From: Neoconidiobolus thromboides FSU 785
Taxonomy: Eukaryota > Fungi > Entomophthoromycota
Assembly (NCBI GenBank): GCA_025603075.1
Contig: MU626316.1
Span: 1 to 64,000, forward strand
Length of the DNA stretch: 64,000 bases
Direction: 5' to 3'
Translations under genes and position numbers: made by a program
The notes under the pieces: generated by a model
The model's database searches: none
Told to the model about the DNA's origin: nothing
What the model saw: the letters and a program-made list of their open reading frames with translations, nothing else
Shown: positions 2,891 through 5,058 of the stretch, one piece after another
How positions within the stretch are numbered: the first letter of the stretch is position 1
How the letters are laid out: every line of letters starts with the position of its first letter

Positions 2891-5058
2891 ATGAGTAGTC
2901 AATTAACATTAGATGGCGAAACCATAACCCAAGCAGAGAATTTTAAGGATACTGCTAATAAATACTTTTCTGGTAATTATATAATAAAATAATATGGAAA
3001 AATAAAATAAAATATTAAAATTCTATATAAAGAAAAGAAGTATACACTATCAATAGAAAACTATACAAAAGCTATTGAGTTAAATCCATCGGTCCCTAGC
3101 TACTATACCAATAGAGCTTTTGCTCATATCAAATTGGAAGCTTATGGTGCCGCTATTTCTGACTCTGAAGCTGCTATTGCTTTGGATAAAAGTTTTGTCA
3201 AAGTATGATAGTAGTAGTGTAAAAAGTAGAGATGATTAATTTAATTTATTAGGGCTATTATAGAAGAGGAATAGCCAATATGGCGTTAGCAAAGTTTAGC
3301 GAAAGCTTGAAGGATTTCAGAATGGTAAAAATAATTATATATAGTTATGTGAAGAATGATAGTAACAATTAAATTAAGGTAGCTAAACTTCGACCAAAAG
3401 ACGCAGATGCTATTAGTAAGTTAAAGGAGTGTGAAAAAATCGTTCGTAGAGAAAAATTCGAACAAGCCATCCAAGTAATTTAAATCTATTACACATTTAA
3501 TTGTATTCTTATGATATATCTTAGTCAGAAAACTCAACTAAAAGCATCTCTGAGGCAATCGATCTTGATTCAATGAGTAACAATAATATATAAAATAACA
3601 TAAAAAGATTTTACACAAACTTTCTAATAGCTATTGAGGATAATTATGATGGCTATAAGTTACAAGACGATGAGTTTAATCAAGAGTTTATTGACGATTT
3701 AATAGAAAGGTTTAAAAACCAAAAGAAAATTCATAGAAAATATGCCTATAAGGTAAATTGCATACTAATACATTCCTAAACACTGAGCTTTCGTTATTAT
3801 TAGATTTTACTTAAATGTAAAGAAATGTTCACTGCTTTACCAACTTTAGTTGATATTGATATACCTGAAGGTACTAAATTAACAGTATGTGGCGATACTC
3901 ATGGTAATACATTGCTTTGTAATAATAGTATAATTATAGCTAATAACTATCATGACAAATAGGGCAATACTATGATTTATTAAACATCTTTAAATTGAAT
4001 GGATTACCAAGTGATAAAAACATGTATTTGTTTAATGGTGATTTTGTTGATAGAGGTTCCTTTTCAGTAGAAGTGATACTGACTTTATTAGCATATAAAG
4101 TGACATATCCCAACTCGATCTATCTTAACCGTGGTAATCATGAAACTGATAATATGAACAAAGTCTATGGCTTTGAAGGTGAAGTTAAAGCAAAATATCC
4201 TTTTTTATTATTATTACTATTATATTTATTATATTTGAAATTTTATTCTTAACTTTTATGTTTACATTTTCAGATTTAATGTTCCAACTGTTCTCTGAGA
4301 TATTTAATGGACTTCCATTAGCCCATTTAATTAAAAATAAGGTTTTAGTTGTCCATGGTGGCTTGTTTTCTAAAGATGATGTTACCTTAGATGATATAAG
4401 AAAAATCAATCGTTTCTCTCAACCTCCTAATGAAGGTAATTTACTTAATCCTTAATCTTTTTATATTAGTGTTAATTTATTATTTAGGTTTAATGTGTGA
4501 GTTATTATGGTCTGATCCTCAACCACAAGTAAGTTTGTTTGTATTAGTACCATTAATATTTATTAATATGATTTTATATAGAATGGTAGATCACCTTCTA
4601 AACGTGGTATTGGTATTCAATTCGGTCCTGATGTTACACATAAATTCTTAAAACAAAACAACCTTGGTAAACTAAGTTTAAATTGTATTTAACCATATTT
4701 AATAACGTTGATTAAATAGATCTTTTGATTCGTTCTCACGAAGTCAAAGATTCAGGATATGTAATTGAGCACGATGGTAAATGTATTACTGTGTTTTCGG
4801 CACCAAACTATTGGTAAGAAATAATTATTATAAAACCCAAACATATTGATGATGATTATTGTTAGCGATTCGGTGGGTAATGAAGGGGCTTATATTCATA
4901 TAGATAGCGAATTAAATGTAAAATATAATAAATTTAACGCAGTGGTAAGTTTTACAGTCATTGAGTAAAGTAAAGATATATTAAACAAATTTTATTAGCC
5001 ACATCCTAATATTCGCGCTATGGCTTATGCTAACCAGTTTGGAGCAGGTTACTTTTAA
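2891..5058 (+). CDS. PPT1: Serine/threonine protein phosphatase 5 (TPR + PPP catalytic domain), 14 exons
   Basis: TPR repeats (YTKAIELNP...[16 protein letters not shown]), [44 protein letters not shown]; 12 GT-AG introns and one AT-AC intron. Confidence 0.97.
4195..4265 (+). other. U12-type (minor spliceosome) AT-AC intron, 71 nt
   Basis: 5' ATATCCTTTT, branch TTCTTAAC about 12 nt before terminal AC; removal restores [23 protein letters not shown]. Confidence 0.92.

Follow-up and report, generated by a model that had tools for sequence, protein, structure and literature searches.

Earlier papers describe minor introns and minor snRNAs from 'Zygomycota' and chytrids (PMC2396436, PMC2846911). 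In a pan-eukaryotic survey (PMC10639083), the zoopagomycete Basidiobolus meristosporus has 249 minor introns and Rhizophagus has 205, and Dikarya have none. The survey's minor introns in Zoopagomycota and their absence from Dikarya agree with an earlier note on this DNA, which held that the minor spliceosome was lost in Dikarya and kept patchily in early-diverging fungi. The window analyzed here is the whole 64,000-nucleotide stretch from Neoconidiobolus thromboides FSU 785, an AT-rich early-diverging fungus, and positions are those of the window unless a genome contig is named. The interval 4195-4265, inside the single-copy PP5 gene of this fungus, is very probably a U12-type (minor-spliceosome) AT-AC intron.

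The gene that carries the interval was modeled by exon-by-exon phase tracking, and the spliced PP5 model was searched one exon at a time.

2891-5058, plus strand: PP5 (PPP5/Ppt1-type Ser/Thr phosphatase) gene; 14 exons, 1455 nt coding, 484 codons and a stop.

None of the 14 exons contains an internal stop. Single-exon Pfam scans detect TPR_1/TPR_11 repeats, the PPP5 region (PF08321, 1e-13) and Metallophos, and in a PDB search exons 8 and 9 match PP5 chains best (1.5e-29 and 2e-17, respectively). The presence of the TPR repeats, the PPP5 linker region and the PPP catalytic domain, together with the PDB relatives, identifies the predicted gene as PP5 of the PPP5C/Ppt1 type. The 24.6-Mb assembly contains a single copy of PP5; the second-best hit to exon 8 has 54% identity. 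Since the gene is single-copy and all 14 exons are open, a working enzyme needs the 4195-4265 splice. The 12 U2-type introns of the gene, which fall within 2973-4998, are very uniform; all are GT-AG, all are 50-60 nt long and 12 of 12 start with GTA.

The remaining intron separates exons 8 and 9, and its predicted parts are as follows.

3963-4194, plus strand: exon 8; its last two bases, AA, belong to a Lys codon; matches human PP5 at 1.5e-29 and is collinear with it to the last residue.
4195-4265, plus strand: predicted U12-type AT-AC intron, the thirteenth intron beside 12 GT-AG introns; 71 nt, 11% G+C, phase 2.
4195-4206, plus strand: 5' splice site ATATCCTTTTTT; fits the /ATATCCTT consensus and pairs with the U11 5' end AAAAAGGGC.
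4246-4253, plus strand: branch-site motif TTCTTAAC; 7 of 8 positions as in TCCTTAAC; predicted branch A at 4252.
4264-4265, plus strand: 3' terminal AC, the end of the AT-AC intron.
4266-4435, plus strand: exon 9; opens with the A that is the third base of the Lys codon.

The 3' end of exon 8 reads ...GGT GAA GTT AAA GCA AA and stops at 4194. Removal of 4195-4265 joins AA (4193-4194) to A (4266), which makes the Lys codon. The intron begins with ATATCCTTTT (4195-4204), with the 5' splice site pattern /[AG]TATCCTT directly at the exon boundary, and terminates in AC. The branch motif TTCTTAAC has T, not C, at its second position, and the predicted branch A4252 is located 13 nt before the last intron base, C4265, which is a U12-type distance (about 10-15 nt). 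The earlier note had placed the intron at 4195-4265 with this start, this end and a branch-like motif shortly before the end; its coordinates are exact and the motif is present at 4246-4253. The intron is the longest in the PP5 gene and among the most AT-rich. In its bases, the interval shows all the sequence features that mark U12-type AT-AC introns. We infer that it is removed from the RNA and that its removal depends on the minor spliceosome.

Frame restoration and homologue alignment define the boundaries. All GT-AG, GC-AG, AT-AC, AT-AG and GT-AC boundary pairs with an open frame were enumerated, and of these in-frame, stop-free pairs only 4195-4265 produces zero indel against the homologues. 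PDB alignment with human PP5 (1wao) proceeds without a gap, residues 1-66 of exon 8 corresponding to 234-299 and residues 4-55 of exon 9 to 304-355. The zero indel and the collinear PDB alignments bear out the earlier claim that removing the gap restores the conserved PP5 sequence in phase. The uninterrupted relative P0144 aligns over the junction with no residue lost. The 20-residue spacing from G-E to P-[LIV] in the AT-AC model is exact in 76 of 79 related metagenome PP5 loci; all 79 usable loci are intronless at the site and many are transcript-like, which makes them uninformative on the conservation of the intron itself. The AT-AG pair 4197-4273 (two residues fewer) and the AT-AC pair 4195-4253 (four residues more) were ruled out on homologue spacing and branch-site position.

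P0144 resembles the PP5 of this fungus but, at 77% identity in exon 8, derives from a different organism. Word searches with exon 8 and with the junction region of a Rhizopus-like ORF returned no protein of this fungus, and a contig search with the ORF neighboring PP5 gave no match. Four metagenome PP5 contigs (L018, L027, L039 and L049) have an in-frame stop at one same codon (..F(stop)YLPL or ..F(stop)NLPL) where relatives have Q or C, which suggests organisms that decode this stop codon as an amino acid in the manner of some ciliates.

The same boundary analysis bears on removal of an in-frame GT-AG intron by the major spliceosome, which would leave PP5 eight residues shorter.

4179-4273, plus strand: rival GT-AG intron (GTGAAG...TTTCAG); 95 nt, in frame, loses GEVKAKFS; junction GAAG joined to ATTTAATG.

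This pair is in frame and stop-free, its TTTCAG is a good acceptor and a TTAAC 21 nt upstream is a possible U2 branch site. However, the GEVKAKFS region that it deletes is ungapped in every solved PP5, PP1, PP2A and PP2B chain that was aligned. The residues also occur in 76 of the 79 related metagenome PP5 loci, and the 8-residue deletion is found in 0 of the 79. The earlier statement that the nearest GT-AG alternative would delete conserved residues is therefore correct for 4179-4273. The donor GTGAAG has G at +3 compared to GTA in 12 of 12 U2 introns of the gene, and the 95-nt length is well outside their 50-60 nt range. The single-copy status of PP5 also counts against this pair, and splicing by the major spliceosome at 4179-4273 is considered very unlikely as the explanation of the locus.

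The overlap of the two sets of sites would also fit a competition between spliceosomes, with the minor spliceosome yielding active PP5, the major spliceosome yielding a shorter, probably inactive isoform and their ratio acting as a regulatory switch. The alternative keeps the frame, its U2-type donor lying 16 nt upstream and its U2-type acceptor 8 nt downstream of the U12 sites. That donor is weak, however, and in-frame alternatives are expected by chance about one time in three. We assign a regulatory switch of this kind a very low probability; the in-frame GT-AG alternative may be used at least sometimes at the PP5 site.

The AT-AC signal at 4195-4265 was compared with chance expectation using a strict window signal consisting of ATATCCTT followed by T[TC]CTTAAC and, after 8-14 nt, AC or AG. 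The window contains one such site. First-order Markov simulations give a chance mean of 0.04 per window, with at least one match in 8 of 200 simulations. The window has ten further RTATCCTT matches, 0 of which have the branch motif downstream, so the earlier note was right to call the PP5 intron its only U12 candidate in the window. The genome was searched with the strict pattern ATATCCTT-N25-55-TYCTTAAC-N7-14-AC, and the reversed pattern served as the control. The strict pattern has 8 matches genome-wide with lengths of 63-71 nt, and the reversed control has 0. At least four of the other seven matches lie between recognizable coding exons and restore the frame on removal. In the genome of the window (G000), the seven are as follows.

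G000 C6:41807-41870: AT-AC candidate in an HBS1-like GTPase (GTP_EFTU); strict pattern, coding exons, frame restored.
G000 C28:118959-119021: AT-AC candidate in an MCM gene (MCM_OB); strict pattern, coding exons, frame restored.
G000 C73:74957-75020: AT-AC candidate in an alpha/beta hydrolase (abhydrolase); strict pattern, frame restored.
G000 C264:13946-14016: AT-AC candidate in an inositol polyphosphate kinase (IPK); strict pattern, frame restored.
G000 C214:23191-23260, minus strand: AT-AC candidate between open frames, with no Pfam match.
G000 C56:59431-59500: AT-AC candidate with weak coding context; may be a chance match.
G000 C90:65058-65128, minus strand: AT-AC candidate with weak coding context; may be a chance match.

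By this pattern, the predicted PP5 AT-AC intron belongs to a genome-wide class of like introns and is not a singleton.

Rfam models were searched against G000 for the minor-spliceosome snRNAs, with the Rfam gathering cut-offs as limits. This was a check proposed in the earlier note, and candidates for all of U11, U12, U4atac and U6atac were found, two of them sub-threshold.

G000 C14:11757-11880: U11 candidate; 65.4 bits against a cut-off of 39.
G000 C1:41699-41843 (L002:1501-1645), plus strand: U6atac candidate; 33.6 bits against a cut-off of 33.
G000 C12:151736-151892: U12 candidate, full-length; 34.7 bits against a cut-off of 53.
G000 C25:43214-43362 (L004:1501-1649), minus strand: U4atac candidate, full-length; 40.9 bits against a cut-off of 53.

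The sub-threshold U12 candidate retains the branch-site-binding AGUAAGGA and the Sm site, and the sub-threshold U4atac candidate retains the K-turn region and AAUUUUUGG. Duplex folding was used to pair the candidates with the intron and with each other. Nucleotides 1-9 of U11 (AAAAAGGGC) pair with UCCUUUUUU of the PP5 5' splice site, and nucleotides 14-27 of U12 form 12 bp with the PP5 branch region in which exactly A4252 is bulged. The 5' end of U4atac forms a 16-bp stem with U6atac (stem II, -26.7 kcal/mol), and UUGCCAAU and AUUGGCA form a second stem (stem I). In both stems the U4atac and U6atac candidates complement each other, and the stem sequences differ from the Rfam consensus.

These pairings also bear on removal of the AT-AC interval 4195-4265 by the major (U2-type) spliceosome. 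U2-dependent AT-AC introns exist (PMC1557818). The PP5 interval, however, has a full U12-type 5' site and a branch motif at a U12-type distance from the 3' end, and it pairs with the genome's own U11 and U12, and a U2-type mode of removal is regarded as exceedingly improbable.

Under minor splicing of 4195-4265, the established U12 pathway would start with pairing of the U11 snRNA 5' end to ATATCCTTTT at the 5' splice site. U12 would pair with TTCTTAAC and bulge A4252 as the branch point, and U4atac/U6atac.U5 would join next. The 5' cut would follow 4194, and the 3' cut would follow the terminal AC (4265), 13 nt beyond the branch. Exon ligation would then join ...AAAGCAAA to ATTTTCAG... and give the conserved PP5 sequence.

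At the box that has been proposed to base-pair with the 5' splice site, which is AAGGAGAGA in most species, the U6atac candidate has GUUGAGAGA. The box is GUUGA, not the usual AAGGA, and the pairing of the PP5 5' site with it is poor. The candidate also has UUGGCA compared to the consensus UUAGCA, the AGC triad reading GGC, and U4atac has the matching UGCCAA. A pattern search of the assembly found no canonical U6atac carrying AGGAGAGA.

Minor-spliceosome proteins were sought by domain. Six-frame, exon-by-exon genome searches of low sensitivity for the U11-48K, PDCD7 and SNRNP25 domains (PF05253, PF16021 and PF18036) returned no match. These blank results carry little weight because the exons are short and the G+C content is 26%. 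The C-terminal end of CCDC84/CENATAC (PF14968) gave a sub-threshold match of 24.2 bits against a cut-off of 25.3 in a low-sensitivity search (L005:1501-1599; G000 C286:6647-6745, minus strand), and this match sits in a short exon-like open frame. CENATAC is a factor tied to AT-AN minor introns. The earlier proposal of a working minor spliceosome is supported by the snRNAs, with U11 and U6atac candidates at or above their cut-offs and U12 and U4atac candidates below theirs that have functional motifs and complementarity. For U11/U12-specific proteins (48K, 59K, 25K, CENATAC and others), the low-sensitivity searches gave either no match or a weak one.

The position of the intron was compared with PP5 genes of relatives. 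In several fungal relatives, among them P0001, P0003, P0011, P0017, P0028 and P0036, the site is intronless and the sequence breaks eight codons downstream (after ...MFK) at a GT, consistent with a U2 (GT) intron there. A Rhizopus-like locus (L009:589-1275) has one long exon over both intron positions and no intron at the PP5 site. With the Rhizopus-like locus intronless and several other fungal relatives carrying the predicted U2 intron eight codons downstream, the AT-AC intron could be a minor intron gained in this lineage or a relic that survives here alone, a reading that we consider improbable.

Two Dikarya-like PP5 fragments were observed to change at the Lys codon. P0108 ends ...RAK and then a stop, at the Lys codon of G-E-C-R-x-K, and P0120 reads ...RSKYPTF at the same Lys codon, where an intron may start GTATCC. 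The two fragments suggest a GT intron that matches the AT-AC intron in position and phase. If this GT intron shares the codon phase, the position would be old and a U12-to-U2 conversion would be hinted, which would count against a recent gain.

The literature search found no paper on U12 introns of PPP5C or of Conidiobolus, nor a description of one at the PP5 GEVKAK Lys codon. The PP5 intron adds one well-defined minor intron to the Zoopagomycota/Entomophthoromycotina catalogue. It does not change existing knowledge, as the minor spliceosome of early-diverging fungi and its loss in Dikarya are already published. Gene callers that accept only GT-AG introns probably mis-model PP5, using 4179-4273, as a protein that lacks eight core residues.

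The predicted PP5 intron shares the /ATATCCTT 5' site and AT-AC termini with the U12 AT-AC introns of the early-diverging fungi Rhizopus, Phycomyces, Basidiobolus meristosporus and Rhizophagus irregularis (PMC2846911, PMC10639083). Its branch site, like theirs, resembles TCCTTAAC and lies 10-15 nt from the 3' end, and its host is likewise a housekeeping gene with many U2 introns. U11, U12, U4atac and U6atac are common to these fungi and, as candidates, to this genome. The PP5 branch motif reads TTCTTAAC, not TCCTTAAC. The closest likeness for the U6atac candidate is with the U6atac 'CC variant' ([GU]CCGA for AAGGA; Lopez et al. 2008, PMC2396436), which likewise is without AAGGA while the introns keep ATATCCTT. 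The candidate still pairs with U4atac, as the 'CC variant' does. Unlike the 'CC variant', its box is GUUGA, with UU in place of CC; its AGC triad is GGC, a change that U4atac matches.
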